Shown here: positions 3,100 through 47,436 of the stretch, in pieces | Layout: every line of letters starts with the position of its first letter | Position numbering within the stretch: the first letter of the stretch is position 1 | Virus record (IMG/VR): IMGVR_UViG_3300042934_000594 | Location: 124,001-188,000 of that record | Strand: one strand, 5' to 3' | DNA: 64,000 nucleotides | Translations under genes and position numbers: made by a program | The notes under the pieces: model-generated | What the model was told of the DNA's origin: nothing | Databases searched by the model: none | The model's input: the letters and a program-made list of their open reading frames with translations, nothing else

Positions 3100-4809
3100 A
3101 TGCCTCATGCCCGAATTCCCTTGCCGGATGTTTACGAATCCGTCATTCGACGCGTGGCGGTGGACGTCACCGCACAGTTGGCCCGTGTGATGAACCTGCC
3201 GGAGGAAACCCAAGTCTTCCTACCCGGTAACACCGATGTCGTCCCCATGAACGGTGGTACCTTTGGTGAGTGCTGCGTCAACCCTGTCAAGATGTCTTCC
3301 ACTGAACGGTTGAAAGTGACGTACCGTGAAGAGGCGGACGAATCGTTCACCCTGACCACCAACGTGAACAACAAGGAAATGCCCCCGTTGTTCATCGACC
3401 GGAACCTGGGGATTGACGTCCGGCAGATTGATCGCTTCGTGACCCTGACGGCTACGTTTGAATACACCGCCCCCAGCATTGTGATCGCCCAGCGCTGGAT
3501 CGATGACATGCGTAACCGGATCTCGATTGGTGGGGCTGAGCTGTACCAGACCTTGCATTACAACTACGCCATCCCCAAGCCATTGATGGTTTTACTCAAA
3601 GCGCTCTATGAGACGCAGGAGCGCTCGGCCTGGCCGACGGGTGCCACGTATGAGGAGTGGATCGCGGCACGCTTTACCGTACCGACGACCGTTCTGGCCA
3701 CCTTGGGCAATACCGACCAGACCCTGGCTGTACCCCAGCACCAGGAAGAGGTCCTGGGGTGGTTTGACTTTACGTCCACCCCAGAAGAGCCCGTCAAGGA
3801 CAGTGAAGGTACGGGGACCTACACCACCTCGTTCTCCTACCAACTGCGCTACGGGCGCCCCAACCAGGTGTATGTGCGGTTTCCCATGTTGGTGCACCAA
3901 CGCCCGATTCCGCGGTTGTTCCGGGACAAGGAACCGTATCAGACGTACATGGCCAAGACCCGTAAGGTCTCCACGACTAAAGGTAGCTTTGATCGGATGA
4001 TGGCCCTGATGCGGGCTAACGTCTTGCCGTACGTGCATTATCCCAACACCGATGACTTTGTAACGGATCGCATCCCGGCAGGGCGCTTGACGTTCTTCAC
4101 CGGGTTGATGATGCTCAAGCCTGATGACCTGCGCTCGGTGTGTGATTTGTCCAACCTGGGCGAGTACCGGTTTAACCCGTACTTCCTGGAGTACTTCTAC
4201 CACATGGGGGACAAGCTGTTTCGTCAGGACCAGTCCATCATTGAGTTTCGGCTCTATGAGAATGAAACCCTGCGCAGTGACATCCCTTTAACCATTATGC
4301 CCGGTACGGTACGGGTGGTGGCCAAAGTGGACTTGGACCCTACCAAGGTGTACCACGTGCAGATTTCATTGATCCGTAACTGGATGACCCTGACCCGTGA
4401 CACGTTGCAGTGCCTACGCCGCTACCCACATGTTCTCTACCACACCCTCAAAGCCTTGAACGTGAACTTAGGGGGTGCCGACGTCTACGGCAACCTTAAG
4501 CTGCTGGGTAAAGACAACCCCCGGCCGTACTCACCGGTCTGCCCGGGTGAAGGTTGGACCGTGGGTCCTTACGTCCCCGATCACCCTATCGGGGGACCGG
4601 GTCATGGTGGTGTGGTCGTGCCGGGGCAACCGTGGACCAACTTGGACAAACCCACCCGGGAAACGTTTGACAATTCCGGGGTGGTTAAAATCATTGACAT
4701 CGACAAGGCCGTTAAGGACACCGATGGGGTCGCACGCAGTGGTTGGCGCGCTGCACCTCTGACGGTCATGTACCTGGGCATCGTCACCTACATTCACAAA
4801 GAGGCCTGA
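3100..4809 (+). CDS. Virion structural protein (phiKZ gp98-like by synteny)
   Basis: ATG 3100 after a GGAG RBS; 569 aa; first gene of a tightly packed four-gene operon after the head-protein cluster. Confidence 0.55.
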   Translation: MPHARIPLPDVYESVIRRVAVDVTAQLARVMNLPEETQVFLPGNTDVVPMNGGTFGECCVNPVKMSSTERLKVTYREEADESFTLTTNVNNKEMPPLFIDRNLGIDVRQIDRFVTLTATFEYTAPSIVIAQRWIDDMRNRISIGGAELYQTLHYNYAIPKPLMVLLKALYETQERSAWPTGATYEEWIAARFTVPTTVLATLGNTDQTLAVPQHQEEVLGWFDFTSTPEEPVKDSEGTGTYTTSFSYQLRYGRPNQVYVRFPMLVHQRPIPRLFRDKEPYQTYMAKTRKVSTTKGSFDRMMALMRANVLPYVHYPNTDDFVTDRIPAGRLTFFTGLMMLKPDDLRSVCDLSNLGEYRFNPYFLEYFYHMGDKLFRQDQSIIEFRLYENETLRSDIPLTIMPGTVRVVAKVDLDPTKVYHVQISLIRNWMTLTRDTLQCLRRYPHVLYHTLKALNVNLGGADVYGNLKLLGKDNPRPYSPVCPGEGWTVGPYVPDHPIGGPGHGGVVVPGQPWTNLDKPTRETFDNSGVVKIIDIDKAVKDTDGVARSGWRAAPLTVMYLGIVTYIHKEA

Positions 4810-18574: not shown

Positions 18575-18641
18575 CCCGGTCTCAGTGTTTCTAAGTGACT
18601 GCTTAGCGGCATTGAACAACTCCTACGTAGGAACACCATCC

Positions 18642-20852
18642 ATGGATAAGCTGAAGCAACTCTTTCTGGGCCGTAAGAATGGCGCCGTAGCCGCCAACTT
18701 CTCGGTTCAGGCATTCGTCAAAACTCTGAACGACCAAGGCACTGCCGTTGGTAGCGTTCTGGCGGTAAACCCGGGTCTGACGCAGTCGATTGGTACCGAA
18801 GCATTCGGCGACATCGGTGGCGAAGAAGCAAACGCAGTTGCCGACCTGTACAGCGGTATCAGCGACACCATTCGCGACCTGGGCTTTGAAGCCTTCGCAA
18901 CCCAGCACAAGATCCCTGCCCGCGTTCAGGAAAACCAAATCCTGGCCGCTTCCATGGCTGCGATCGCTGCTGGCGACGAACAGCGCTACAAGAAAGCGCT
19001 GCGCGGCATGGGCAATGCCAAGGCTCTGGGCGCCAACCAGTTCGCTGGTAACCCACAGCTGGCCGGTCCTTTCGGTTCGATCGAAGTCTTCAAGGATTCG
19101 ACCGGTCTGGAAAACTACAACGAGAAGTCGCAGCGCGATTTCCGTGTGGTCACCATCGGCTACAACCTGACCGCTGTTCGCCAAGACCCCTTCGGCGAAG
19201 CGATCTACCCAACTTCCGTCGTTAACCCGACTGAAGGCGGCGTTGTTCAGATCCTGCCATACGCAGTGGTCATGAAAGACGTGTTCCACGCAGTCACTGG
19301 CCAGCGTCTGGCCAACGAAGAAATCAACATGGTTGAAGCCTTCCGTGATCCTTCGATCCTGGAAGACGTGTCCACTTCGCTGACTCCAGTAGTCGACGAG
19401 AAAGGCACCAACCTGAACGTCTTCGTTCCGGCTACTCTGATCGCGCCGAAGCCGGTTGAAACCGACCACGGCGGCACGCTGATGACGGCTCCGCTGAAAA
19501 TCGGCGCCAAGTTCGACCTGATCGGCGTTTCGAACCGCAACCAGCTGGTAGCTGGCAACGTTCTGGACGTGACCGACACCATCGACCCAGCTCTGAAGCT
19601 GAAGTCGATCATCGTCACCATCCAGGGCAAAGCTCACCGCTTCCAGACTGACCGCATCCCAACTGCGGTGTTCCAGCCTGCGCTGATCGGCGACACCCGT
19701 ACTGCCCAGCTTCACTTCACCAGTGAAGACCTGGTTCTGAACGGCGACATCCGCGCTGTCGACGGCTCCACCGTCACTGGCATCACCGAGTTCGCCAACC
19801 GCAAGTGGACTGCTCGCCTGAGCGTTTCCCTCAGCGGTTCGATCAGCACCTCCAAAGGCGACTGCTGGATCACTGCGACCCCGGTCATCGTTGAGAAGCT
19901 GTTCGACGAAACCGGCGACAAGCTGGACCAGACTGCTGGCGACGCTGAAACCGTCCTGGAAACTCTGGGCGAGATCGTTGTAGTTGGTTACGAGCTCGAC
20001 GCTCGCTTCACCAACACCAACCGTCGTGAGCGCGGTCACCTGCTGCAAACTCGTGCGCTGCAATTCCGCTACTCGATCCCGATGCACGCTCCGATCACCC
20101 TGCCGCTGTCCACCATGGACGACGAAGGTCCGGGCGAAGTCGTGAAGGCGCTGACTGTTGCCACCAACATCCGCAACTCCAACAACGCGGTCACCCGCGT
20201 GCTGAACTACACCGCACAGCTGAAAGAAGTTGTCGGTAACGGTTTCGACCGTCCGAAGTTCGGCGCTGTTGAAGGCGCGCTGTCGGCACTGATGCGTCCG
20301 ACCTACCGCTACAAGAAGCTGGATCTGGTCCAGGCACTTGACACCATCCGTTCGAGCGATCGTTGGGATGACGTTACTTGCGCGATCATGAACTGCATCA
20401 AGTCGATGCTGTTCCCAGCGTACCGCGATTCGAACATCGAAGCGGTGTTCCGCACCGTGACCGGTAACCAAGACGAGCGTCCGAAGTTCATTCTGGCGAC
20501 CGACAAGGAAATCGCGAACTACCTGATGACGTCGGGCGACGACCGTACCATCGGTCCGTACCTCAAGTACGACATCGTGTCCACCAACAACATCCGTTTC
20601 GACGGTAAGTTGCTGGTCCTGCCAACTCGCGAGAACCCATCCGAAAACGACATCCTGTCCTTCGGTCAGTTCTACTACGTGCCGACCATCGTTGCTGACC
20701 TCAACATCAGCCGCAACGGTCAGGTATCGCGCGAGATCGCTGCCGTGCCGTTCAACCTGCACGTGAACAACATCCCATTCGTTCTGGAAATCGACATCGT
20801 CGGTCTGAAAGAAGTCATGGGCTCTTCGTTGTACAACAGCAAGCTGGGCTGA
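18642..20852 (+). CDS. Major capsid protein (phiKZ gp120-like)
   Basis: ATG 18642 after AGGAA; 736 aa; extreme codon bias; propeptide with GTE/GFE/GLE sites (TGLE-NYNEK); size and synteny with the helicase and RNAP genes match. Confidence 0.9.
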   Translation: MDKLKQLFLGRKNGAVAANFSVQAFVKTLNDQGTAVGSVLAVNPGLTQSIGTEAFGDIGGEEANAVADLYSGISDTIRDLGFEAFATQHKIPARVQENQILAASMAAIAAGDEQRYKKALRGMGNAKALGANQFAGNPQLAGPFGSIEVFKDSTGLENYNEKSQRDFRVVTIGYNLTAVRQDPFGEAIYPTSVVNPTEGGVVQILPYAVVMKDVFHAVTGQRLANEEINMVEAFRDPSILEDVSTSLTPVVDEKGTNLNVFVPATLIAPKPVETDHGGTLMTAPLKIGAKFDLIGVSNRNQLVAGNVLDVTDTIDPALKLKSIIVTIQGKAHRFQTDRIPTAVFQPALIGDTRTAQLHFTSEDLVLNGDIRAVDGSTVTGITEFANRKWTARLSVSLSGSISTSKGDCWITATPVIVEKLFDETGDKLDQTAGDAETVLETLGEIVVVGYELDARFTNTNRRERGHLLQTRALQFRYSIPMHAPITLPLSTMDDEGPGEVVKALTVATNIRNSNNAVTRVLNYTAQLKEVVGNGFDRPKFGAVEGALSALMRPTYRYKKLDLVQALDTIRSSDRWDDVTCAIMNCIKSMLFPAYRDSNIEAVFRTVTGNQDERPKFILATDKEIANYLMTSGDDRTIGPYLKYDIVSTNNIRFDGKLLVLPTRENPSENDILSFGQFYYVPTIVADLNISRNGQVSREIAAVPFNLHVNNIPFVLEIDIVGLKEVMGSSLYNSKLG

Positions 20853-20927
20853 AAAAGTACCGCCCGGTTACTTGAGTCCGGGGCAACTCGGACTCTTGAG
20901 GATGGGCGTGTGCGCCTACTCGAGTGA
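20853..20927 (+). other. In-frame 24-codon extension after the capsid UGA (candidate readthrough tail) containing a GCAA-tetraloop hairpin
   Basis: TGA-AAA-AGT-ACC-GCC-CGG-TTA-CTT-GAG... gives KSTARLLESGATRTLEDGRVRLLE-stop; 15/21 identical to the C-terminus of ORF 45579-46127. Confidence 0.7.
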
Positions 20928-20928
20928 C

Positions 20929-20968
20929 CATAATAAAAGCCCGGCTTCGGCCGGGCTTTTATGCCGTC
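20929..20968 (+). terminator. Capsid-operon terminator followed by TATGCCGTC
   Basis: AAAAGCCCGGC-TTCG-GCCGGGCTTTT-ATGCCGTC, located after the extension's stop codon. Confidence 0.8.
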
Positions 20969-20983
20969 TCAATGTATTTAAAA

Positions 20984-35933: not shown

Positions 35934-36878
35934 TTAAACCACTGGGGTTTCGATCAGTTCCAGCACCGGCCACCAGCCAACGTTGGCGGTGTTGGTGTAG
36001 GTGAACCCGTTGCGAGTTGCCACACCCGCGCGGCTGGCCGCACCTGAACCGCGCACGACGTTGACCTGGCTGCCTGCACTGATGCCTTTCTCCTGCACGT
36101 GAGCCCCTGAGGAAGGCAGACTCAGCTGGTTGGGCCCGACGGCGGCCACGTTGGCCATCCGCTGGACTGTAGGCACGTACGTCACCAATGGGTACACCAG
36201 GTCGTCCCATTCGCAGAGAAAGCTCTCAATGGGTTCGGGTACCGAGGTGTTAGCCGCGAAGGCGGTGTAGTCATCGTCGCTGTAGCCACGCATCAAACGA
36301 ACCCGGAAGGTATCCGGACCGATTTTGACCGTGACGCCCTGACCCACCGGAGCCCCGGCGTTGTAAGGACCCGGTCCGTCTACACCAAAGACCAGACCCA
36401 GGTCATACAACTGCTTCCAGGAGACAGTGGTGCTGATCACCCCTTCTGGAATGATCAGTATCTTGCCGTTACGGGCAAACTTGTGCCACTTGGGGGTGAC
36501 GTTGATCGACGTCCCCAAGGTCAACCCTACCTTGGCGCGCAGCTCATTGGCGTTGGTGAATTGCGAGGAGGCCATGCTACCAAAGTAGCCATAGTTGTAA
36601 TCGCCCTGCACCAGCACGTTACTGCCCGGCCCACGGCGCGGTACAGCGCGAATGGGGTAGTTCGGGGAGACGACCCGGTCGGTGGGGGACGTGGTTTCAA
36701 ACACGTAGTAGTACAGCTGCCCCCGGACAACCGTGGTGTCCTTGTAGGTGGTTTCACCGTTGGACAAGGTGGCGATCGGGTTGGCGAGGTTGGCGCGATC
36801 AAGCGGGGCATCACCCCGGTAGATCTTAACCGTCACCGCCACGACGTTGGGGTTTTCCCAGTTCAGTTGCGTGTACAT
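35934..36878 (-). CDS. Tail/baseplate protein, gp131-135-like paralog
   Basis: GPGSNVLVQGDYNYGYFG, KFARNGKILIIP, WWPVLELIE. Confidence 0.7.
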   Translation of the reverse strand: MYTQLNWENPNVVAVTVKIYRGDAPLDRANLANPIATLSNGETTYKDTTVVRGQLYYYVFETTSPTDRVVSPNYPIRAVPRRGPGSNVLVQGDYNYGYFGSMASSQFTNANELRAKVGLTLGTSINVTPKWHKFARNGKILIIPEGVISTTVSWKQLYDLGLVFGVDGPGPYNAGAPVGQGVTVKIGPDTFRVRLMRGYSDDDYTAFAANTSVPEPIESFLCEWDDLVYPLVTYVPTVQRMANVAAVGPNQLSLPSSGAHVQEKGISAGSQVNVVRGSGAASRAGVATRNGFTYTNTANVGWWPVLELIETPVV

Positions 36879-36887
36879 ACAAGTTCC

Positions 36888-37922
36888 TTAAATGGTTGCG
36901 CCGCTGATGGAGAAGGCATTGAGTGGGGCGATCCGGTGCGTCACGTTAACCACGTCTGCATCCAGATCAGCCGCCTGAGCGGTAAAGGCAAAGGCGTTGA
37001 GGAACGTACCGCTGTCACCCTTCAACCGGACGGGATTGAGGACACCGTCGGGGGTTACCTTAAGCGTGGGGGCACGTGTGGGCCACAGGGTGCTCAGGTT
37101 ACGGGGATTGACAATACTGCCCGCTGGGGCTTGACGCGGAGTCACAATCGATGCCGCCATGGGCGTCACCGTCACTCCTGCAACCTCATAGGGGTCCTTC
37201 AAGTCTTTGGTCAGTATCAGCTCTAACACCGGTCGCCATTGGGCAAAGTTGCTAGTGTTGAACGACTTGGCTTGCTCACCTTTGGTGTTGAACTGCGTCC
37301 CCGAACCGCGAGTCATCGCGTTATTGATGTTGGAGGCCGACGTTTCTTGCACCCAGGTGGTGGCCACACTGGCCCAGATCACCGCACCTGCGGTGTAGGT
37401 ATCCCAGCCTCCGCCCTGCACGACGCGGGGTAGTAATTGACCAAACTCGGTGTTGAGCAGGTCATCAGCTGGGACGGTACCAGCCGGGACAGGGTCGGCC
37501 TGAAAGCCAGTCATCAACCGTGGAAAGAAGTACCAAGGTTGACCTTTCTCGTAGTAGCGCAATACTTTTCGTTGCATCACGCCTGCACCCACGGGGTAAG
37601 CACCGAAATCCTTGGTGCCGTAAACCATCCCCGCGTTGTAGATGTCATTCCAGCTGGGCAAAATGCGCAGCGGTGATTTGCTGATATAAAGGATCTTGCC
37701 CTTGTAGGCGAATTTCAACCAGGCAATCGTTGCCCCACCTTGGGTCAGATCATTCCCCGCCTCAACCAACGGTGAGATCAGGTTGGCGTTTACAAAATCA
37801 GCCGCAGGGACCTCGCCAAAGTAACCCAGTTGCATGTCGCCGGCTTTGAACACTTTAGGTCCTGGGCCGTAATCCGAACTGCCGCTGGTTCCACTGCCTG
37901 CGGTGAGTAGAGCCTCGATCAT
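36888..37922 (-). CDS. Tail/baseplate protein, gp131-135-like paralog without the Fn3 domain
   Basis: GPGPKVFKAGDMQLGYFG, KFAYKGKILYI, WRPVLELIL, plus a C-terminal extension. Confidence 0.7.
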   Translation of the reverse strand: MIEALLTAGSGTSGSSDYGPGPKVFKAGDMQLGYFGEVPAADFVNANLISPLVEAGNDLTQGGATIAWLKFAYKGKILYISKSPLRILPSWNDIYNAGMVYGTKDFGAYPVGAGVMQRKVLRYYEKGQPWYFFPRLMTGFQADPVPAGTVPADDLLNTEFGQLLPRVVQGGGWDTYTAGAVIWASVATTWVQETSASNINNAMTRGSGTQFNTKGEQAKSFNTSNFAQWRPVLELILTKDLKDPYEVAGVTVTPMAASIVTPRQAPAGSIVNPRNLSTLWPTRAPTLKVTPDGVLNPVRLKGDSGTFLNAFAFTAQAADLDADVVNVTHRIAPLNAFSISGATI

Positions 37923-38683: not shown

Positions 38684-41600
38684 TTAGTAGCTAGCGCCAG
38701 TGGAACCGATCCACTTAGCACCGTTCCAGACGAGGGTAACCACAGTGATCGTAGTACCCAGGACCGGGGCCGTGTTCTGGTTCCAGGACACGTTGGCCGG
38801 CCAGGTGATCGCACCGGTGTTACCGTTGATGAAGATGACCACCGTCATCGAACGGTCAGCCGCAGGTTGGTTCTTGAAGGTCAAGGTCCGCGCTGCGGTC
38901 TGGGTGAAGTTGAACACCTGCGCCACAGCGAAGTCCAGTTCCGAACTGGTGGCCGTTGGCAATTGCGCCAGCGCCAGGTCGTAACGGTTGAACCGTGCCC
39001 AAGCGCCGTCCTTACGCTGGTAGACCGCACCCGGTACGTCAGTCGGTGCATCAGAGATACCCGACGCAGGCGCCGTGTACTTGACCCACTGGCCGTCTTT
39101 GCGGAAGTACGCTGCACCATCGACTGGGGCTTCACCTACGGGCAAGGCCACCCACTGACCGTTCTCACGGATGTAGGGTTTGCCGTCAGTTGGAGCTTCA
39201 CCCACTGCCAGCTCGACCCAGTTCGCACCTTTACGGCCGTAGATCTTGCCGTCGTCCGAAGGGCTGTAGACGTTGCCGCCCCCGAAGTGGCCCAGGCTGG
39301 TCCAGGTGGTGGTGTTGGACTTGGTGAAGTACTCCTGCGTGAGCGTGTTGTACCAGTAGTCACCAGCCGAACCGTCCACCAGGCCAGGGTCACGGGTGTC
39401 GTTGAGCCAGAGGCTACCACGGGCACCTTTATCACCTTTATCACCCTTGTCGCCTTTGATCCCAACGCCAGGTTCACCCTTGTCGCCTTTTGGACCGGTG
39501 ATGTTACCCAGGTCCTCGTAGGCGCTACCCGTCCAACCCCAGAAGTGCGAGTTGATCAAGTAACCTTCACCCAGGATGCCGTCCGCAGGCAGGTCAGCGG
39601 TGCTGGCCAGCTTACCGAGGATCTTGACGCCTGGACCCATCAGACCTTGCTCACCCTTGAGCGAGTTCAGCCAGTCCTGTTCCAGACCTTCAAAGCCCAA
39701 CATGACCGCGATGTCGTACGCCGAAGGACCGGTGAGGTCGTTGAACGCCACCCAGGCTTCGTCGTGGAACACCGTCATTACGCCTTTGACGAAGTACACG
39801 TCGCCTTCTTCGTTGCCTTCTGGAGGCAAGTCAGACGCTTCTTGTACCGCACCTTTGAGCTTGAGCGATGCGCCCGTTGGACCAGTCAGACCGATGTCAC
39901 CTTTATCACCCTTGTCGCCCTTCACCCCTTTGAGGTTACCTGCGTTGGTGAAGCCGGTGCCGGTGTAGATGTACAGGTCACCGTTGATTTGCAGGTAGGC
40001 ATCGCCCATCTGCTGACCAGTGGTTGGCAGCTCATCGACGCTTTGGATGACGCCAGTGATTTCAAGGCCGTTACCCTGCGCCCCAGGATCACCTTTATCT
40101 CCCTGGTCACCTTTATCACCTTTGTCCCCCTTGTCACCGTCATCGCCTTTAGGGCCGACGTACGTACCACCGTCTACCCAAGCGTTGTTGATGTTGAGGT
40201 ACAGGCGCTGACCACCGATGACGGCTTCGTATGGGGCCGCAGTGGCCACATCTGGCAACTCATCGACGCTGTCGTAGACGCCCGTGATGGCCAGGTCTTT
40301 ACCTGGGTCACCCTGATCGCCTTTGATGGAGTCGCCCTGATCACCCTTATCGCCTTGGTCACCTTTATCCCCTTTCAGGGAAGCGAGCCATTCGGCCTCG
40401 GTGCCAGTGTAACCACCCGTCTTGGCTGCTTCGTACGCCGACTTACCGACCAGCGTCTTGAGGAACTCGTCCTTGGTCCCGGTGAAGCCTTCAGCCACCG
40501 CCAGTTCGTAAACGCCCTGACCGTGCAGCGAAGCCAACCATTCGGTCAGCGTGCCTTCGAAGCCTTCATCGACAGCCGCCTCGTAAGCGGACGTACCGCC
40601 CAGTGTGCCCAGGTCGATCCAACCATCGGTCGCCGAGAACACAAACAGATGACGGTTGACGTAGTACGCATCACCCGGCTGGTTATCGGTCGCTGGCAGG
40701 TCTTCGGCGGAGGGGAACTGACCCAGGATTTTGACGGAGTTTGCAGGGATACCCTGGTCACCTTTATCGCCTTTGTCACCCTTATCGCCTTGGTCACCTT
40801 TGATCGTCAGCAGCCATTCCGCTTCCGTGCCTTCGAAGCCGTTCTTGACGGCGATCTGGTAGTTGGTTTTACCAACCAACGACGCCAGCCATTCAGCTTC
40901 AGTTCCGGTGAAGCCGTTGTCCTTGGCTGTCTGGAAGGCAGTTTTACCCACCAGCGATGCCAACCACTGGGCTTGGGTACCCTGGTAGCCATTGGCTTGA
41001 GCGATGGCGAACGCCGACTTACCTTCTGGACCGACCTGACCCACCTTGGCCCATTTGGTGTTGTCCCAGACGTACATCGTCTCATTGATGATGTAGCAGT
41101 CGCCTGGCTGGTTACCCACGGTTGGCAGTTGTGCCACGTCAGGGTAAGAACCCAGGATACGCAGACCCAGGCCATCGGTACCGCGCAAGGTTTCGAACCA
41201 CTCCTCGTACGTACCTTCAAAGCCGTTCTGCTGGGCCAGCTCGTAGGCGTTCAGGCCGCGTTCACCACGGATCTGACCCACGTTGCTCCAGGCGCCTTGG
41301 TACATGGTCCACAGGTCGTCACCGATGATGTAGGACTCGCCTTCATCAACCGTTTCAACCGCCGGCAGGTCGCTTTCAGCCGCCAAGGTACCGATGATGC
41401 GAGTACCCACACCCAGGCCACCGTCGTCACCCGGTTCGCCTTTATCACCCTTGTCGCCTTTGAGCGAAGCGATCCAGTCGGCTTGGCTACCGGCAAAGCC
41501 CAGGCTCTTGGCGGTGTCGTAGGCGGACTTGCCCACCAGGCTTTCCAGCCAGGCCGACTCTTCCCCATTGAAACCGTTTTCAACCGCGATCTCAAACGCT

Positions 41601-42742
41601 GACTTACCGTCAGTGCCTTTGAGGGCGTCGAGCCACTCTTCTTCGGTGCCGCCAAAACCTGCGGCTACCGCGAGTTGGAACGCCGACTTGCCCGCAAGCG
41701 ACGCTACCCACTCAGCCTCGGTCCCGGTGAAGCCGTTGATACGAGCCACTTCGTAGGCCGAGTTACCGTTGTCACCTTTGTCCCCCTTGAGGGAGGCAGT
41801 CCAGTCAGCCTCACTGCCGGCGAAACCTGCGGCCACAGCCACTTCATACGCAGATTTGCCAATCAGGCTTTCCAACCACTGGGCTTCGGTGTCTTCAAAG
41901 CCAGCCGCTTGGGCCACTTCAAAAGCCGACTTGCCGGTCAAGCTGGCGCGCCATTCGGCTTCAGTGCCCGTGAACCCTGCATCCTTGACCAGGTCGAATG
42001 CCGACTTACCTGGATTACCCTGATCGCCCTTATCCCCTTGATCGCCTTTATCACCGACCAATGAGGTCAGCCAATCGGCCTGAGTGCCGTCGAACCCGCC
42101 GGCTTGGGCGACCTCAAAGGCACTCTTGCCCACCAGGGACTTGAGCCATTCGGCTTCAGTGCCTACAAAACCTTCGGCCTTGGCCACTTGGTAGGCGTTC
42201 TTGCCCACAAGCGAAGCCAGCCATTGTGCTTCAGTACCGGAGAACCCACCGGCAGAAGCCAATTGATACGCGGTCTTACCGATCAGCGAGTTGAGCCACT
42301 GTGCTTCGGTCCCGGCAAAGCCGTTCTCGATGGCGACTTCATAGGCGCTCGAACCGGTGACGCCTTTGAGCGATTGAATCCACTGCACTTGGGTGCCAGT
42401 GAAGCCGTTTACCACGGCCACTTCATAGGCACTGTTACCTGGATCCCCTTTGACACCTTTAAGCGACGCTACCCATTGCGCTTCGGTACCGCTGAAGCCC
42501 AACTGTACGGCAACTTGATAGGCAGACTTGCCTTTGAGGGACTCGATCCACTGGGCTTCAGTGCCCGTGTAACCGTTGGCAACAGCAACCTCATAGGCGG
42601 ACTTGCCCTCGTTACTGCGCAACTTGGTGATCGAGATTTTCTTGTTGACCAACACTCCGTCCAGGCCACGTTGGATGATTTCAACAAACTCATCGCCAGT
42701 GAACGCTGTGACGAGCTCCAACTCTGAGATCTTGCCAGTCAT
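38684..42742 (-). CDS. Collagen-like repeat fibre protein
   Basis: 1352 aa; N-terminal GKISELE domain; about 22 GKSAYE.A...GF.GTE..WL.SL repeats; (GDK/GDQ)n triplets; about 7 LP..G...GD.Y modules; APxDG..Y.R.DG.W repeats; fibre-tip C-terminus. Confidence 0.8.
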   Translation of the reverse strand: MTGKISELELVTAFTGDEFVEIIQRGLDGVLVNKKISITKLRSNEGKSAYEVAVANGYTGTEAQWIESLKGKSAYQVAVQLGFSGTEAQWVASLKGVKGDPGNSAYEVAVVNGFTGTQVQWIQSLKGVTGSSAYEVAIENGFAGTEAQWLNSLIGKTAYQLASAGGFSGTEAQWLASLVGKNAYQVAKAEGFVGTEAEWLKSLVGKSAFEVAQAGGFDGTQADWLTSLVGDKGDQGDKGDQGNPGKSAFDLVKDAGFTGTEAEWRASLTGKSAFEVAQAAGFEDTEAQWLESLIGKSAYEVAVAAGFAGSEADWTASLKGDKGDNGNSAYEVARINGFTGTEAEWVASLAGKSAFQLAVAAGFGGTEEEWLDALKGTDGKSAFEIAVENGFNGEESAWLESLVGKSAYDTAKSLGFAGSQADWIASLKGDKGDKGEPGDDGGLGVGTRIIGTLAAESDLPAVETVDEGESYIIGDDLWTMYQGAWSNVGQIRGERGLNAYELAQQNGFEGTYEEWFETLRGTDGLGLRILGSYPDVAQLPTVGNQPGDCYIINETMYVWDNTKWAKVGQVGPEGKSAFAIAQANGYQGTQAQWLASLVGKTAFQTAKDNGFTGTEAEWLASLVGKTNYQIAVKNGFEGTEAEWLLTIKGDQGDKGDKGDKGDQGIPANSVKILGQFPSAEDLPATDNQPGDAYYVNRHLFVFSATDGWIDLGTLGGTSAYEAAVDEGFEGTLTEWLASLHGQGVYELAVAEGFTGTKDEFLKTLVGKSAYEAAKTGGYTGTEAEWLASLKGDKGDQGDKGDQGDSIKGDQGDPGKDLAITGVYDSVDELPDVATAAPYEAVIGGQRLYLNINNAWVDGGTYVGPKGDDGDKGDKGDKGDQGDKGDPGAQGNGLEITGVIQSVDELPTTGQQMGDAYLQINGDLYIYTGTGFTNAGNLKGVKGDKGDKGDIGLTGPTGASLKLKGAVQEASDLPPEGNEEGDVYFVKGVMTVFHDEAWVAFNDLTGPSAYDIAVMLGFEGLEQDWLNSLKGEQGLMGPGVKILGKLASTADLPADGILGEGYLINSHFWGWTGSAYEDLGNITGPKGDKGEPGVGIKGDKGDKGDKGARGSLWLNDTRDPGLVDGSAGDYWYNTLTQEYFTKSNTTTWTSLGHFGGGNVYSPSDDGKIYGRKGANWVELAVGEAPTDGKPYIRENGQWVALPVGEAPVDGAAYFRKDGQWVKYTAPASGISDAPTDVPGAVYQRKDGAWARFNRYDLALAQLPTATSSELDFAVAQVFNFTQTAARTLTFKNQPAADRSMTVVIFINGNTGAITWPANVSWNQNTAPVLGTTITVVTLVWNGAKWIGSTGASY

Positions 42743-42852
42743 TTCGACTTCCCCTGCTGTGATACCCGATGGGCTTGCGCCCGTTTTACCCCGGCCGCTA
42801 CGTTGGCCGGTAATAACGTTTCAAACTCATAGATAAATGTATTTTTTCCCGA

Positions 42853-42885
42853 GACGGCATAAAAGCAGCCCCCGAAGGGACTGCC
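42853..42885 (-). terminator. Hairpin followed by TATGCCGTC on the minus strand
   Basis: GACGGCATAAAA-GCAGCCCC-CGAA-GGGACTGC on the plus strand. Confidence 0.55.
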
Positions 42886-42901
42886 TGTTTTGCGGGACAG
42901 C

Positions 42902-43759
42902 TTACGCCAACACGCCTTCGTCCAGAGTCCAGGAACCATCCTGTTCTTTGGTGAAGCCGATGTCGGTCAGCAGCGCTTGCAGGCCTGCTGCGGTCGCGAA
43001 CTTGGCATCGTCAGTACCTTCGATCAGTTCAGCACCAGTCGCCTTGACAGGCAGAACCGGGGCTTCTGGCGCGGTGTACTTGAGTTTGCCCGTGGCCGCG
43101 TCGTATTCCAGGCCGGCGTCGGAGGCGGCATCAAGGCTGATGGCTTGCCGAGCACGTTCGTCGGTGAAGTACTTGTTGCCCGCACCTTCAGTAACCTGGT
43201 CAGTGCTACCAGGCGAGGCAACGATTTCCAGGTACTGCGTGCCAGTCCAACGGAAGGCGCCAGCGCCGTCAGCTGCCACGTAGATCTTGCCGGATTCACC
43301 TTCAGCTGGGAAGTCAGCTTCGGTTGGGAATTCCAGCACGTCATCGACGTAGGAAGGCAGGATGCCAGCTTTCAGGAAACCGGTGGTGCCTTCGAACAGG
43401 TCAGCCGTGGCGGCTTTGCCTGCAACCACGAGGGTCAGGTCATCAACAGACTGTTTGCTGGCCATGGTGGCCAACGCTTCAGACAGGGTTTCCGACAGGG
43501 CGTCGAGGTCCGAGTCATTGGCTTTGGCCAACAGGGCTTCAGTCAGACCAGGGATGTCCGACAGTTCCAGAGCACCAACCTTCTGGTCAATCAGAGCACC
43601 GATCTGGGCTTCGCTCAGACCGCCGATCAGGTGACCACCTGCGGTCACGCCATCTTGCACGTAGACCTGGTTGGTTTGAGTGTCGACCACCAGACTGCCG
43701 GCAGGACCTACATAGGCGCCGACCAGGGCGGTAGTACCGCGCTTGAGTTTAACGATCAT
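42902..43759 (-). CDS. Fibre/virion protein with Mtd-N-like N-terminal domain
   Basis: ATG 43759 after GGAG; KRGTTA...G.LVVDT.TNQVYVQDGVTAGG, coiled coil, LPSYVDDVLEF..FPAEGESGKIY module; biased codons. Confidence 0.65.
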   Translation of the reverse strand: MIVKLKRGTTALVGAYVGPAGSLVVDTQTNQVYVQDGVTAGGHLIGGLSEAQIGALIDQKVGALELSDIPGLTEALLAKANDSDLDALSETLSEALATMASKQSVDDLTLVVAGKAATADLFEGTTGFLKAGILPSYVDDVLEFPTEADFPAEGESGKIYVAADGAGAFRWTGTQYLEIVASPGSTDQVTEGAGNKYFTDERARQAISLDAASDAGLEYDAATGKLKYTAPEAPVLPVKATGAELIEGTDDAKFATAAGLQALLTDIGFTKEQDGSWTLDEGVLA

Positions 43760-43828
43760 GCTGTTCTCCAAGGTGTTGCGTGAATCGGCTTATGAGCAGT
43801 ATGCCCCAGCCTCACACAATAGGTGACT

Positions 43829-44296
43829 TTACGAACGGATGGTGAGCTCGCCTTCATCGATGACCAACTCACCGGCATCGTTTACCACAAAACCCAGTCG
43901 CTCAAGCGCTCGAACAACGGGTACATCTAGTGGGGTCCACTCCCCCACCGTATCGCCTGCAACCAACACGTGCCCTTTAACGTCTGGGGTAACGCTGTAC
44001 AGCGCCCCGAGGGCGGTGATCCAATCCGTTTGTGTCCCTGGGAAACCCTGATCGACAGCGATGTCATAGGCCGATTTCCCAACCAGCGTGGCAAGCCACT
44101 CTTCTTCAGTCCCTTCAAAGCCATGCTTGACGGCAATCTCGTACGCCGACCCGGTACTGAGTTCCAAGTCCCGCTTGATCGTCTGCAAACTGACCTGGCG
44201 GTTCTTGAACGTGCCTGCCACCTGAACCACGACTTCAAACAGCGCATCGAGGGTCAGCTTTTCAGCCGGTTGCATTTGTGAAATTTTGCCTGCCAT
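43829..44296 (-). CDS. Short fibre-associated protein
   Basis: Shares the GKISQM N-terminus and two SAYE repeats with 38684-42742, and a GF....G...IDEG tail with 42902-43759. Confidence 0.65.
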   Translation of the reverse strand: MAGKISQMQPAEKLTLDALFEVVVQVAGTFKNRQVSLQTIKRDLELSTGSAYEIAVKHGFEGTEEEWLATLVGKSAYDIAVDQGFPGTQTDWITALGALYSVTPDVKGHVLVAGDTVGEWTPLDVPVVRALERLGFVVNDAGELVIDEGELTIRS

Positions 44297-44311
44297 CGCT
44301 GTGTCCTTAGG

Positions 44312-45160
44312 TTACGCTAGCAGCTTCTTGGCGCGGGTGTATTCAGCTGCCAGCTTGGTGTCGTATTGATTTTTGGCGTAGCCTGCACCGTTGTACAGGC
44401 GGGCGAAATTCACCCAGTCTTGCGTTTGGATGGCCTTGAGCAAACCGCGCTGAGACTGGATAAACTTGACGAAAGCTTCCAGCTGCATACGTTCACTGAC
44501 GTACATCGAGGCGACGAACGCATCGACGCTGGCAAAGCCCAGCAGTTCCCAGTGGAAGCCCATGATCTGGTACGCCCCCCACGAGGCCGATTCCAGCGCT
44601 GCGGCCTTATTGATGAGCTTAGCCTTCTCCAGGCGGTCGTATTCCCGTGAACCGCCGATGTAACCGCCGGACTTGGTATTCACCAGACCCGGTTGGTTGG
44701 CCATGAACGGCGCTGGCTTGATGTCGTGCTCATCGAGCATGCGGTACATGATGTGGCGTTCGAACAGAATCACGGGACGACCGTCATCAAAGAAGCCGTG
44801 ACCGCGTGATTCCACGGCGTTGACGCACATCACTGACGCAACGTCTGTGCGCAGTGCACCGGCCGCCCATACAAGGTCAGCTTGACTGAGCAGTTTCAGG
44901 CTGACAGGGCAGCAGCCCCGAAGGATCTTGATGGTCTTAGGACCCGCAATTCCATCAGCTACCAGGTTGTTCTTGGTCTGAACAGCCCGGACGAACTTTT
45001 CGGTGGTAGGGCCGAAATCGCCATCGGGTTTGAGTTGGTAACCGGCGTTGACCAGAAGCTGTTGCAGCTCCAGGACCTCGGCACCTTTATCACCACGACG
45101 CAATACGGCATCTTTCGCAACTGCGACCCGATCTTCGGCGCCCAGTGTCGACAGATCCAT
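44312..45160 (-). CDS. Modular endolysin: peptidoglycan-binding domain plus DUF3380-type N-acetylmuramidase
   Basis: ATG 45160 after AGGAG; LRRGDKGAEVLELQQLL..DGDFGP.T..DGIAGPKT; VESRGHGF, FERH, SASWGAYQIMGFH, FARLYNG. Confidence 0.9.
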   Translation of the reverse strand: MDLSTLGAEDRVAVAKDAVLRRGDKGAEVLELQQLLVNAGYQLKPDGDFGPTTEKFVRAVQTKNNLVADGIAGPKTIKILRGCCPVSLKLLSQADLVWAAGALRTDVASVMCVNAVESRGHGFFDDGRPVILFERHIMYRMLDEHDIKPAPFMANQPGLVNTKSGGYIGGSREYDRLEKAKLINKAAALESASWGAYQIMGFHWELLGFASVDAFVASMYVSERMQLEAFVKFIQSQRGLLKAIQTQDWVNFARLYNGAGYAKNQYDTKLAAEYTRAKKLLA

Positions 45161-45203
45161 ATTTGTTACTCCTAGGGTGGGTGTTGCATTAAGTGAGGTT
45201 GTG

Positions 45204-45575
45204 TTATTGAGGAATGTCGCGTGCGATCTGCTCGGCCACTGCGGCTGCAACGTCAAAGCTCTCAAGCTCCTCCGATGACGACAGCCGGTGGATAATGTCA
45301 GCCACACGTTGCTCAGCACGGATGCATCGTTCCAGGTAACTTCCGACCCCATACACGTAGGTCGCAATATTGGCAGCGTTCAGTACGATCGTCTCTTTCC
45401 CACTCCACCAGTCCAGACTGGGTGGGGCATTCTCACGCATGAGAACTTGATGAGCCGACAGCAGGTTGGCGTACGTGCCCTGATTAACGTTGAGAAGATG
45501 TCCTTCAACGGTGACCGAATGGGTGAGTGCTTCGAGTTCACCCATCAGGCCGACAATGCATCTATCCACGCTCAC
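45204..45575 (-). CDS. DUF4376-like fibre chaperone
   Basis: 123 aa; AEQRVADII..LSSSEELESFDV tail similar to 37977-38633. Confidence 0.45.
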   Translation of the reverse strand: MSVDRCIVGLMGELEALTHSVTVEGHLLNVNQGTYANLLSAHQVLMRENAPPSLDWWSGKETIVLNAANIATYVYGVGSYLERCIRAEQRVADIIHRLSSSEELESFDVAAAVAEQIARDIPQ

Positions 45576-45578
45576 TCC

Positions 45579-46127
45579 TTAAGCGGTTTCGAGCAAACGA
45601 ATGCTCCCGTCTTCTAACTGCCGTGGTGTGCCGTCTTCGAGCAAGCGCGCGTTCGGGTTGACGCCAGAGCTGATGACTTCAATCTGCACTTCTCCGTAAT
45701 ACACATAGGAGCTGCTCAGGATCTTCATCGTGTAGATAAACGGCTTAGCACCGTCGCTCAACGTGGTGTTGCCCCAATCCACGTCAGTCGCGTCCAAGAA
45801 ACGGTTACGCGAACGGTTGATCTCCAGGGCAATGGAGCGGGCGGTGATCGCCCCTTGCACCACGATCTTGGGTTTAAGGCCCAAGCTCTTGGCAATGTCA
45901 AGGCGCCGGAACGCCAACCAACTTTTGATGTTGGTCCACTGGTTGTCCAGCTCCACAAAGGAGCGACCAGGAATCAGCGAGGTAGGACTGTGTGTCAGGT
46001 CACCGAAGACGGCGTACTCTTCACGAACGTCCAGATGGGGCAGACCTTTCTGGATCAGTGCCACCAGGGCCTGTTTACCAGGAAGGTCGTAGGGGAAATC
46101 GTCATCAATGGGGATCAGAGTGTTCAT
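45579..46127 (-). CDS. Virion structural protein with C-terminal RLLEDG repeats
   Basis: FRRLDI and SSSYVYYGEV module as in 27268/27709; ends NPNARLLEDGTPRQLEDGSIRLLETA. Start at 46127 is a best guess. Confidence 0.6.
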   Translation of the reverse strand: MNTLIPIDDDFPYDLPGKQALVALIQKGLPHLDVREEYAVFGDLTHSPTSLIPGRSFVELDNQWTNIKSWLAFRRLDIAKSLGLKPKIVVQGAITARSIALEINRSRNRFLDATDVDWGNTTLSDGAKPFIYTMKILSSSYVYYGEVQIEVISSGVNPNARLLEDGTPRQLEDGSIRLLETA

Positions 46128-46222: not shown

Positions 46223-46648
46223 TTAAGTGTTGCCGTTGTTCTGTGCGTTGTTCCAACCTTCGATCAGTTGCCCGATCAAACCGAACGTGCCTTTGATCAT
46301 CTCCATCAGTAGATCAAAGTAGTTGTGGCTCAGTGGGGTGTCGTTAAACACTTCCGCTAAAGCGATTAAAACAAACACAACAACCAACGGGACCGCAAGG
46401 ACCAGAATGGCAGTCTGGTAGCTGTCTTTCCCACGAACAGCCCCCAAGCTCTTATTGAGCATGCGGTCTTGCTTGACCTGGTCCGGGCATTGGTACACCT
46501 GGCTCAGGACGGTACTCCCTGGCATATCAAGCGTGATAGGGGTGTCGCCACCCAATGTTGCATTTACAAAAGCCCGAATCGTTTTGGAAAATGGACTTTT
46601 AGACAATGGTTCATCCCCGAGATCAATCAGTGCCTCCTCCAGTGTCAT
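46223..46648 (-). CDS. Membrane protein, holin candidate
   Basis: One TM segment (AILVLAVPLVVVFVLIALAEVF) plus an amphipathic tail; overlaps the end of the o-spanin gene. Confidence 0.35.
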   Translation of the reverse strand: MTLEEALIDLGDEPLSKSPFSKTIRAFVNATLGGDTPITLDMPGSTVLSQVYQCPDQVKQDRMLNKSLGAVRGKDSYQTAILVLAVPLVVVFVLIALAEVFNDTPLSHNYFDLLMEMIKGTFGLIGQLIEGWNNAQNNGNT

Positions 46649-46973
46649 GGTGGTTCTCCAAAGCTGATTGCTTTTTGTCGTATAACTGCCGCAGCTTTTC
46701 TAGCTGCTTGTTACAGTTTCCGACTGCATCGGTCTGCGCGTCGGCGTAGTCCTTCATCACCAAAAATCGCGCTTCCCATTTCGTGGGCGCCTTGGGGTAG
46801 AGGCGTTGAGCGTAGATCAACTCTTCGGCCGTCGGCGGTACCGCAACGTAGCAGTTTGCGGTCAGGGTACTAGGGGGTGCAACCAGGGTTGGCTCCGGTG
46901 GCGGTGCAGTAACGTGCGTGCATCCGGTCAGCCAGGTCAGTGAGAGCAGCGATAACCAAAGGATCATCTTCAT
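46623..46973 (-). CDS. Outer-membrane spanin (Rz1-like lipoprotein)
   Basis: MKMILWLSLLSLTWLTG-C lipobox, Pro-rich segment, C-terminal coiled coil with Cys; overlaps the 3' end of the i-spanin gene. Confidence 0.75.
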   Translation of the reverse strand: MKMILWLSLLSLTWLTGCTHVTAPPPEPTLVAPPSTLTANCYVAVPPTAEELIYAQRLYPKAPTKWEARFLVMKDYADAQTDAVGNCNKQLEKLRQLYDKKQSALENHHDTGGGTD

Positions 46974-47436
46974 CTGCTGGAGCGGGCGAGACAGTAGGTT
47001 TGACAGCATGTGGCTTTTCCTTGCGGACCGATTTTATTTGAGCTGATGTTCGAGCAGCGCTTGCAGTTGAGCGAGTCGGTACAGCAACCCGAGCAGCTGG
47101 TACAGGCTGAACATCATGAGCGCCACCAGCAGAAGGCTCAGGATGGGCCGTCGCCAGGAAGGCGGCGGAATCAGCTTGCCGACTCTTTGCTTGAAGCTCT
47201 CGGCGTTCGGTCGTCGCTTGAACATATTCAGCCACAGCCTTGTCAGCGGCTTGGTAGGTCTTGGCTTGGAAGGCGTTGGCCCGCTCCAAGCGTTGGTTGT
47301 CCACACCCAGCACAATGTTTTTGTCTTTAGCGGCCTGCCACTTGTTAAAGCTGACGTAGCCCACTACCCCTGCTACCGCAAGTACTCCGAGCAGCACCCA
47401 CTCAAACCACTTCACACCCTTGAGTAGTTGAAACAT
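46870..47436 (-). CDS. Inner-membrane spanin (Rz-like)
   Basis: N-terminal TM segment, coiled coil, C-terminal Cys residues (YCTATGANPGC). Confidence 0.75.
   Translation of the reverse strand: MFQLLKGVKWFEWVLLGVLAVAGVVGYVSFNKWQAAKDKNIVLGVDNQRLERANAFQAKTYQAADKAVAEYVQATTERRELQAKSRQADSAAFLATAHPEPSAGGAHDVQPVPAARVAVPTRSTASAARTSAQIKSVRKEKPHAVKPTVSPAPADEDDPLVIAALTDLADRMHARYCTATGANPGCTP

Follow-up and report, generated by a model that had tools for sequence, protein, structure and literature searches.

The phiKZ-like jumbo phage studied here carries a 24-residue peptide tag at two places, at the C-terminus of a baseplate-type protein and in frame directly behind the TGA stop codon of its major capsid gene, and this tag is predicted to plug into the N-terminal domain of the collagen-like fibres of the phage. 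The same pair of tag and proposed socket occurs in many unrelated tailed phages and, apparently unreported, in phiKZ itself. The tag consists of three 8-residue repeats, R-x-L-E-D-G-x-x. The socket is a domain of about 45 residues, termed KISEL here, which is shared by two fibre genes. The features lie in a window of 64,000 nucleotides, which is the whole stretch of DNA that was analysed, and are collected in the table below.

Table. Features of the tag and the proposed socket in the 64,000-nucleotide window.
Position	Strand	Feature	Evidence
18585..20852	+	Major capsid protein gene (phiKZ gp120 type); a 736-aa product (P0137) in the public protein collection implies a start near 18642	PF25620, E 7.6e-215, 715 bits against a curated cut-off of 27, residues 116-746
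20850..20852	+	TGA stop of the capsid gene, inferred to be leaky, followed by A	Read directly
20853..20927	+	Predicted readthrough tail: 24 codons (20853-20924) with three R-x-L-E-x-G repeats plus its own stop; no start codon of its own	Repeats read directly; codon variation across 20 loci
20933..20962	+	G+C-rich hairpin followed by TTTTAT	-26 kcal/mol, z -5.4
45579..46127	-	phiKZ gp143 homologue, 182 aa (phrog_2935, DUF7941-related); globular body with the predicted fold of phiKZ baseplate protein gp127, plus C-terminal tag	phrog_2935 E 6.5e-25; 38.8% identity to phiKZ gp143 over 96% of the query; model pLDDT 85; Foldseek 9xqd_0
45582..45653	-	C-terminal tag of the gp143 homologue (residues 159-182), proposed docking peptide	Most conserved part of the family; residues 158 and 160-182 form the modelled interface
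38684..42742	-	1352-aa collagen-like fibre: KISEL N-terminal domain, about 27-aa SAYE-type repeats, collagen G-X-Y runs, foldon-like motifs, C-terminal domain as in phiKZ gp146	PF01391 E 1.6e-7; Fibritin_C E 1.7e-8; phiKZ gp145 at aa 3-161 (E 6e-32); gp146 at aa 425-1350 (E 3e-38)
42608..42742	-	KISEL N-terminal domain of the fibre (about 45 aa), proposed socket	Alignments; residues 1-6, 21, 23 and 31-33 of all three copies touch the tag in the model
43829..44296	-	155-aa paralogue with the same N-terminal domain (44162-44296) and two SAYE-type repeats	Alignments and profile searches
42902..43771	-	289-aa fibre-like protein with a different N-terminal domain (Mtd_N-like), between the two KISEL genes	PF18454 E 2.3e-5, below the curated cut-off
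44312..45157	-	Endolysin (PG_binding_1 plus N-acetylmuramidase), between the tag gene and the fibre genes	PF11860 E 1e-61
46223..46648	-	Homologue of the phiKZ gp142 holin, directly upstream of the tag gene	phrog_14484 E 4.2e-33; role from PMC12894885

A preliminary description had noted that the RLLEDG motif ends both the 182-aa protein and a readthrough tail of the capsid gene, and that two fibre-like genes start with a shared short domain. These observations proved correct, although the capsid tail lies outside the block from 38684 to 46127 to which the description referred. The two tails share 15 of 21 residues. A six-frame scan of the whole 269,430-bp genome revealed tandem repeats of the motif at these two places only, and KIS-type N-termini at 42742 and 44296 only. 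The two N-termini align with each other and with paralogues in relatives over about 45 residues, with I5, S6, E21 and N33 conserved, which is far beyond chance. In the gp143 family, R161, E164, G166, R169, E172, R177 and E180 are invariant.

The arrangement of TGA plus tail recurs in 25 related phage loci, including phiKZ (record position 120509), phiPA3, 201phi2-1, PA1C, Phabio, Psa21, RVTF4, HPP-Temi and the nearest relative. TGA is kept in all 25, while eleven relatives ending in TAA have no tail. Across 20 loci, the invariant R, E and G residues are encoded by two to four different codons, one R using both CGN and AGR, while the other two frames are full of stops. None of 120 capsid homologues has the tag fused without a stop. 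Taken together, the capsid tail looks translated and deliberately sub-stoichiometric. The pooled pN/pS of the tail is only 0.64, against 0.40 for the last 30 capsid codons, but synonymous sites are saturated and the per-column codon count is the better test. The hairpin lies after the tail, which places the tail on the capsid mRNA, and an equivalent hairpin follows every related capsid gene. Note that it was found by folding, whereas a consensus scan for terminators did not call it. A changed genetic code or a suppressor tRNA can be rejected, since TGA ends 74 of 269 crudely called genes and the four tRNAs of the genome are Tyr, Gln, Asp and Asn. A prohead-protease site, which follows the pattern S/A/G-x-E, is likewise rejected because position P3 of the repeats is L or T. 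Translation of the capsid tail through a leaky TGA is thus strongly supported by conservation, although there is no protein-level evidence for it in this phage or in phiKZ.

The tag proved to be a general C-terminal module. A scan at DNA level asking for only two repeats, located anywhere, yielded 47 viral loci, of which 41 have a third repeat and 33 have the motif within 4 residues of the C-terminus. Carriers include tail tube proteins (PF06199), gpJ-like tip proteins, a Dit-like protein and ORFs of 44-80 aa. The preliminary description had proposed that tag and KISEL N-terminus often occur next to each other and form a peptide-domain pair, and had suggested co-occurrence and complex modelling as tests. 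The adjacency is real. A domain profile built only from chimallivirus sequences found the downstream genes in the unrelated contigs, and in 12 unrelated non-jumbo viral contigs a gene with the domain at its N-terminus starts within 30 nt after a gene ending in the tag (tail tube, tip, Dit or small ORFs). Among 9,686 ORFs, including the whole genome of the window phage and 30 capsid loci, no hit lay outside tag loci except the two genes of the window. In the window itself, the KISEL genes are not adjacent to the tag gene but start 1.3 and 2.8 kb downstream of it. Tag and domain are present together in phiKZ, the window phage and five other chimalliviruses, and both are missing, by the same searches, from Goslar, RAY, SPN3US and RSL2. 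RSL2 has a fibre with a divergent N-terminus but no tag by the pattern used, which makes the co-absence count soft.

A complex of three fibre N-termini with residues 150-182 of the gp143-type tag was then predicted. The model places one tag against three copies of the domain, with ipSAE values of 0.71, 0.73 and 0.73, while the best of three controls scored 0.01. That mark was reached by 58 of 80 solved complexes and by 2 of 110 mismatched pairs, but these counts hold only roughly here because the model rests on our own unpaired alignments, built from window sequences and protein-search results only, and contained three copies of one chain. Each copy uses the same residues, which include the conserved I5, S6, E21 and N33. 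A PDB sequence search with the domain profile found no relative, so that the score is unlikely to reflect structures already seen by the predictor.

The gp143 homologue is probably a protein of the baseplate periphery. Its monomer model matched phiKZ gp127 of the outer peripheral baseplate (9xqd_0; E 3e-6, probability 1.00, TM 0.56/0.66), the only Foldseek hit below E 0.001. With Pfam profiles, the window protein gave no hit at E <= 0.01, while a homologue scored 34 bits against a cut-off of 27 for DUF7941 (PF25613) and several others carry PF25613 in precomputed annotation. The fibre may therefore be mainly a baseplate fibre, with the capsid as a second site.

Information available for phiKZ is of relevance in this context. 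The protein gp145 carries the domain, and gp145 and gp146 are annotated as 'structural head protein' in AF399011. These labels, which presumably stem from the 2012 phiKZ head-proteome paper, rest here on the GenBank record only. Neither protein is mentioned in the main text of the phiKZ virion atlas, which builds the baseplate fibres from gp131/133/134/135 (PMC13250141). Both lack transposon insertions, whereas gp143 tolerates five (10.1101/2025.11.23.690004), which fits a second docking site. In pentons, the C-terminal arm of the capsid protein touches the outer-surface protein gp244 (PMC11297242).

The most likely explanation, which we hold with moderate confidence, is that the tag is a docking peptide and the KISEL domain its socket. 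One tag would bind three copies of the domain, one repeat per copy, so that a single chain anchors a trimeric fibre. In this view, the phage offers the tag at two sites, always on the gp143 homologue and, in addition, on a minority of major capsid subunits made when ribosomes read through the TGA. If 1-5% of ribosomes read through, a value assumed by analogy with known leaky UGA codons, 1,615 capsid subunits would give some tens of tags per head, on which the long collagen-like fibre or its 155-aa paralogue could hang. What our analyses show are the motifs, their conservation, their genomic linkage and a controlled complex model, while actual readthrough, actual binding, the 1:3 stoichiometry and exposure of the tail on the outside of the head are inferred. 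The interpretation given in the preliminary description is thus partly supported: the proposed pairing of peptide and domain is well supported computationally by three independent lines, namely the adjacency in unrelated contigs, the joint presence or absence across chimalliviruses and the complex model, but that fibres sit on mature heads, and that the long fibre rather than its paralogue uses the capsid site, remains inference.

Among other explanations, the one that deserves most attention, although we consider it unlikely, is that tag and domain do bind but the capsid tail does not decorate the mature head. It may act during assembly, for example by bringing fibre proteins or tails to capsids, or end up inside the shell, and the fibres of the finished virion would then hang only from the baseplate through the gp143 homologue. 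This is in line with the gp127-like fold, with a proposed location of the DUF7941 family on the peripheral baseplate (10.64898/2026.04.21.720040) and with two high-resolution phiKZ capsid studies reporting no head fibres, although sparse, flexible fibres would be averaged out. Furthermore, the C-terminal arms are buried in a central six-helix bundle in hexamers, although the end of this bundle may or may not point outwards. On the other hand, the head annotation of gp145 and gp146, their absence from the atlas text, the dispensability of gp143 but not of gp145/146 and the contact of the penton arm with gp244 speak against it, and other clades append Ig-like Big_2 domains, typical surface decorations, at the same post-stop position.

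We regard it as improbable that the tag is instead the head-to-tail docking peptide of the DUF7941 family. The gp143 family is related to DUF7941 by profile and fold, and the Goslar preprint predicts that a disordered stretch of one protomer binds the N-terminal domain of the next and shows gp22 filaments. However, the tag is common in small siphophage-like and other contigs on tail tube, tip and Dit proteins, where the neighbour found to recur is the KISEL gene, Goslar is rich in DUF7941 proteins but has no tag by our pattern, and the model, in which the KISEL domain was the only partner, passes its controls. Slightly less likely still is a role of the gp143 homologue as nothing but a cytoplasmic lysis regulator whose tail serves holin control, with the similar capsid tail being unrelated to fibres. 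The gene does reside between the holin and endolysin genes, as in phiKZ, where gp143 has been reported as a cytoplasmic regulator of the holin. Deletion of phiKZ gene 143 delays plasmid-driven lysis by about 15 min, and gp143 is predicted to bind the N-terminal domain of the holin through its first globular domain (PMC12894885). That predicted contact does not use the tail, gp143 and its relatives are annotated as virion structural proteins, and the tail, the most conserved part of the family, recurs on tail and capsid proteins of phages that show no gp143-type gene in the stretches retrieved. The two roles could coexist. Least likely, the capsid tail is an untranslated relic of an older, longer capsid gene or of a recombined cassette of tag and fibre. 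An open frame of 24 or more codons after the stop is common in this genome (35% of TGA-ending genes), and two close relatives lack the tail. However, the repeat positions stay invariant across 20 loci while their codons vary, the frame is open in frame 0 only and always ends before the terminator, and the stop is always TGA, never TAA or TAG, and is never lost.

Nothing comparable was found in the papers or solved structures searched. A literature search on readthrough in the capsid of phiKZ returned nothing relevant. Several known systems share single aspects. A leaky UGA at the end of the coat gene of Q-beta (Leviviricetes) yields a minority of C-terminally extended coat subunits, the A1 protein, that are built into the capsid. 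Here, the virus is a dsDNA jumbo phage with an HK97-fold capsid, the extension is a 24-residue predicted docking tag rather than a folded domain of about 200 residues, and readthrough is inferred. Programmed frameshifting produces sub-stoichiometric, surface-exposed C-terminal extensions of major virion proteins in T7 (gp10A/10B) and in Listeria phages A118 and PSA, as well as Ig-like domains added to major tail proteins. The mechanism inferred here is in-frame stop readthrough, and the payload would be a peptide recruiting another protein rather than an adhesin domain itself, although sister clades append Big_2 domains behind the capsid stop. DUF7941 head-to-tail docking in chimalliviruses (Goslar gp22/gp23, phiKZ gp126-gp127; 10.64898/2026.04.21.720040) involves what is, by fold and by the profile hits of homologues, the same protein family as the tag carrier and the same idea, i.e., a flexible stretch of one virion protein plugging into a small domain of another to build fibres at the baseplate periphery. 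However, the socket proposed here is the N-terminus of collagen-like fibres, and the tag is a defined triple repeat that also occurs well outside chimalliviruses. Head fibres and capsid-borne adhesins such as phi29 gp8.5, T4 Hoc and the capsid fibres of Agrobacterium phage 7-7-1 (PMC12796354) are accessory fibres or domains that help first contact with the host, but bind the capsid lattice through their own folded domains at fixed sites, whereas here the capsid protein itself would carry the anchor at a density set by translation. In branched tail fibres and tailspikes, for example G7C gp66/gp63.1 and CBA120 TSP1-4, a short N-terminal module of a trimeric receptor-binding protein determines where it docks, and these modules are exchanged between phages. 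The partner proposed here is a 24-residue linear tag on a monomer, with three repeats matching the three presumed chains of the fibre. The C-terminal domain of T4 gp5, a triple-stranded beta-helix with octapeptide repeats, has the same 8-residue period and threefold arrangement, and the monomer model of the tag shows short strands every 8 residues, but this is a resemblance only.

A further-reaching reading is possible but must be considered tentative. Tailed phages may share a portable docking code, in which a 24-residue, three-repeat C-terminal tag on any monomeric virion protein (capsid, tail tube, tip or Dit) recruits a trimeric fibre through a 45-residue N-terminal domain, one repeat per chain. 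In phiKZ-type jumbo phages the code would be written behind a leaky UGA of the major capsid gene, so that translation fidelity sets how many fibres each head carries. Such head fibres, phiKZ gp145/gp146 and the 1352-aa fibre of the window, would be the so far unplaced, essential host-recognition fibres.

phiKZ has been studied for more than 20 years and near-atomic capsid and virion maps now exist. A conserved readthrough form of its major capsid protein would be a structural species missed by those studies and the first such case known to us in a dsDNA phage. The idea gives a concrete, testable location for gp145 and gp146 and would also explain why gp143 is dispensable. A short linear tag with a small cognate domain, found on tail tubes, tips and capsids of many unrelated phages, would be a natural non-covalent tag-and-socket tool for studying virion assembly. 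It would also explain how fibre genes move between phages as cassettes and would allow the attachment site of a fibre to be predicted from sequence alone.

The window belongs to a phage genome of 269,430 bp with 56% G+C, whose major capsid protein is of the phiKZ gp120 type (PF25620, E 7.6e-215). The nearest deposited phages, RVTF4, PA1C and 201phi2-1, match only at about 78% DNA identity over a third of the query. The block of interest lies on the minus strand and reads, in order, spanin-like ORFs, a holin homologue, the phiKZ gp143 homologue, an unknown 123-aa ORF, an endolysin, a 155-aa protein, a 289-aa fibre-like protein and a 1352-aa collagen-like fibre. The two overlapping spanin-like ORFs resemble the o-spanin and i-spanin pair described for phiKZ. 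One has an L-T-G-C lipobox-like signal end and the other an N-terminal hydrophobic helix. The 123-aa ORF has no Pfam or PHROG match and no counterpart at that position in phiKZ. Next to the fibre gene lie four tandem ORFs of 304-344 aa. The two of these that were scanned match the same virion-protein families, phrog_1062 and phrog_3589, so that this may be a paralogue array.

Positions of the features discussed, in the window and in related contigs
Sequence	Feature	Position	Strand
Window	Major capsid gene, phiKZ gp120 type	18585-20852	+
Window	TGA stop of the capsid gene	20850-20852	+
Window	Capsid stop and tail examined for RNA folding	20850-20927	+
Window	Near-invariant CTTTATG(C/T)CGT after the hairpin	about 20958-20970	
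Window	Four tandem ORFs of 304-344 aa	34073-37922	-
Window	Scanned ORF of the array	35934-36878	-
Window	Scanned ORF of the array	36888-37922	-
Window	Collagen-like fibre, 1352 aa	38684-42742	-
Window	Fibre-like protein, 289 aa	42902-43771	-
Window	155-aa protein	43829-44296	-
Window	Endolysin	44312-45157	-
Window	Unknown ORF, 123 aa	45204-45575	-
Window	phiKZ gp143 homologue, 182 aa	45579-46127	-
Window	Three 8-residue repeats ending the gp143 homologue	45582-45653	-
Window	Holin homologue	46223-46648	-
Window	Two overlapping spanin-like ORFs	46623-47436	-
L004 (chimallivirus contig)	In-frame Big_2 Ig-like domain after the capsid stop	3784-4395	
L023 (chimallivirus contig)	In-frame Big_2 Ig-like domain after the capsid stop	3757-4044	
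L080 (62-kb contig)	fn3-like ORF	3738-4133	
L080 (62-kb contig)	Tag in the -1 frame across the end of the fn3-like ORF	4098-4204	
L080 (62-kb contig)	Start of a KISEL gene	4207	
L102 (HPP-Temi)	Annotated 47-aa "hypothetical protein" in another frame over the capsid stop and tail	1075-1218	

The preliminary description had reported a shared repeat motif at the end of the gp143 homologue and behind the capsid stop, together with a common N-terminal domain on two fibre-like genes. This observation holds, since every sequence it named was found in its place. The gp143 homologue ends in three repeats of the form R-x-L-E-D-G-x-x. The 24 codons behind the TGA of the capsid gene, which are in frame and lack any start codon, carry the same three repeats and are followed by a second stop and a stable hairpin. 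The two tails agree at 15 of 21 positions. In six frames of the whole genome the tandem motif occurs only at these two places, and the KIS-type N-terminus occurs only on the two fibre genes. TGA serves as an ordinary stop in this genome (74 of 269 crude genes) and there is no suppressor tRNA. The tail therefore implies a leaky stop and not another genetic code.

The arrangement of TGA, 24-30 in-frame codons with three repeats, a stop and a hairpin recurs widely. It was found in RVTF4, 201phi2-1 and PA1C, in 18 of 29 IMG/VR capsid loci including phiPA3, PA7, Phabio and Psa21, in HPP-Temi, in phiKZ itself after gp120 (TGA at record position 120509) and in the closest relative of the window, locus L108. 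In contrast, eleven relatives whose capsid gene ends in TAA have no tail. In an alignment of 20 tails the R, E and G positions are invariant but are written with two to four different codons, one arginine using both CGN and AGR, while the other two frames are full of stops. None of 120 capsid homologues from a collection of 5.8 billion proteins carries the tag fused without a stop. Taken together, these sequence data argue that the tail is made and that it is kept rare on purpose. Note that the pooled pN/pS of 0.64 is not decisive by itself, because synonymous sites are saturated. The tail RNA folds more stably than shuffled sequences in all 20 loci (mean z -1.9; window z -3.3). Part of this stability comes from complementarity between Arg (CGTC) and Asp-Gly (GACG) codons, and the structure could be a stimulator of readthrough or a by-product of the repeats. 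In all chimallivirus loci examined, the hairpin is followed by the near-invariant CTTTATG(C/T)CGT, which may be a promoter or processing signal for the next gene. The in-frame tail is not annotated in any record inspected, and in HPP-Temi the deposited annotation instead places a hypothetical protein in another frame across the stop and tail. The distant chimalliviruses Goslar, PCH45 and RP12 also end the capsid gene in TGA. Each has an in-frame tail of 15-48 codons that lacks the R-x-L-E-D-G repeats but shares a "DGF" element, and this may be a second type of readthrough tail.

The gp143 homologue belongs to phrog_2935 and is 38.8% identical to phiKZ gp143. In 17 aligned family members the tag is the most conserved stretch, with R161, E164, G166, R169, E172, R177 and E180 invariant, and it is present in chimalliviruses with and without the capsid tail. 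A model of the protein (pLDDT 85) has one significant structural neighbour, phiKZ gp127 from the outer peripheral baseplate (9xqd_0; E 3e-6; TM 0.56/0.66). This fits the DUF7941 assignment made for gp143 in the Goslar preprint.

The domain of about 45 residues shared by the two fibre genes aligns with phiKZ gp145 and with two or three paralogues in each of five other chimalliviruses, always next to the gp143 and endolysin genes. The long fibre of the window unites what are two genes in phiKZ, combining the N-terminal part of gp145 (E 6e-32) with the body and C-terminus of gp146 (E 3e-38). Its residues about 1175-1250 hold three tandem foldon-like motifs (Fibritin_C, E 1.7e-8).

To ask whether tag and domain are also linked outside jumbo phages, IMG/VR was scanned for DNA encoding only two repeats, L-E-D-G-x-x-R-x-L-E-D-G, at any position. 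Of 47 loci, most of them on contigs of 4-70 kb, 41 have a third repeat and 33 have the motif within four residues of the C-terminus. The carriers are diverse and comprise major tail tube proteins (PF06199, E about 1e-21), gpJ-like tip proteins (phrog_1101), another tail protein (phrog_376), a Dit-like protein and ORFs of 44-80 aa. A profile of the domain built only from chimallivirus sequences hit ORFs in these contigs, and a widened profile added four loci that had not been used to build it. In 12 of the scanned loci (L049, L058, L060, L071, L072, L074, L075, L076, L078, L080, L089 and L095) the domain begins within 30 nt after the stop of the tag gene, and in four more it lies 0.5-7.5 kb away. 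In L080 the tag has no start codon and lies at a run of five G, which looks like a tag made by frameshifting. In 9,686 ORFs, which included 30 capsid loci and the entire genome of the phage itself, the profile hit nothing outside tag loci except the two genes of the window. The statement in the preliminary description that LLEDG-type repeats and KISEL N-termini often occur side by side is therefore correct, and the association cannot be explained by shared ancestry of whole genomes. Among jumbo phages, phiKZ has exactly two tags and a KISEL gene, while Goslar, RAY, SPN3US and RSL2 have neither by the same searches, although RSL2 does have a fibre with a divergent N-terminus.

A complex of three copies of fibre residues 1-100 with residues 150-182 of the gp143 homologue was predicted. 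ipSAE was 0.71, 0.73 and 0.73, against 0.00-0.01 for three controls. The mark was reached by 58 of 80 solved complexes and 2 of 110 mismatched pairs, but these counts hold only roughly here, because our own alignments were used and the prediction held three copies of one chain. All 23 tag residues from 160 to 182 are in the modelled interface, and each fibre copy contributes the same residues (1-6, 21/23, 31-33), which include the conserved I5, S6, E21 and N33. One peptide with three repeats facing three equivalent chains suggests a monomer-to-trimer adaptor, a stoichiometry inferred from the contact list. No PDB chain resembles the domain by sequence.

Leaky-stop coat extensions and N-terminal fibre anchors are both known, whereas their combination and the triple-repeat tag appear to be new. 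Our literature searches revealed neither a capsid readthrough form in chimalliviruses nor this tag-and-socket pair, and the two phiKZ structure papers and the Goslar preprint do not mention it at the terms searched.

The preliminary description interpreted tag and domain as a peptide-domain pair that attaches the collagen-like fibre both to the gp143 homologue and, at a density set by readthrough, to the capsid, and this interpretation is partly supported. What the analysis itself establishes are the motifs, their conservation, their genomic linkage and a complex model that stands out from its controls, whereas readthrough, binding and fibres on the head are inferred without experimental evidence. 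Other explanations, all less likely, compete with this one. The capsid tail may have a role in assembly only, which is the strongest of these, or, least likely of all, may be an untranslated relic, and the tag may dock to DUF7941 domains. Alternatively, the role of gp143 may be purely lytic, as a recent paper calls phiKZ gp143 a lysis regulator that binds the holin through its first globular domain (PMC12894885). That role, however, does not involve the tail and may coexist with a structural one.

In the most likely scenario, the gp143 homologue would sit at the baseplate periphery and hold a fibre trimer by its tag, while a small fraction of capsid subunits would carry the same tag. With 1,615 subunits per T=27 head and an assumed readthrough of 1-5%, this would give tens of sites per head. 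Data from phiKZ fit this picture but do not prove it. gp145 and gp146 are labelled head proteins in AF399011, and neither is mentioned in the main text of the virion atlas, whose baseplate fibres are gp131/133/134/135. Both lack transposon insertions, while gp143 tolerates them, as expected if the capsid offers a second anchor. In pentons the capsid C-terminal arm reaches the outer protein gp244, while in hexamers it forms a central six-helix bundle. Furthermore, sister clades place Big_2 Ig-like domains in frame behind the capsid stop, after TGA in L004 (E 4e-9) and after TAA in L023 (E 5e-7), where the extension ends in an R-x-T-E-D-G-type triple repeat. The presence of these domains argues that the position behind the capsid stop is used for surface display.
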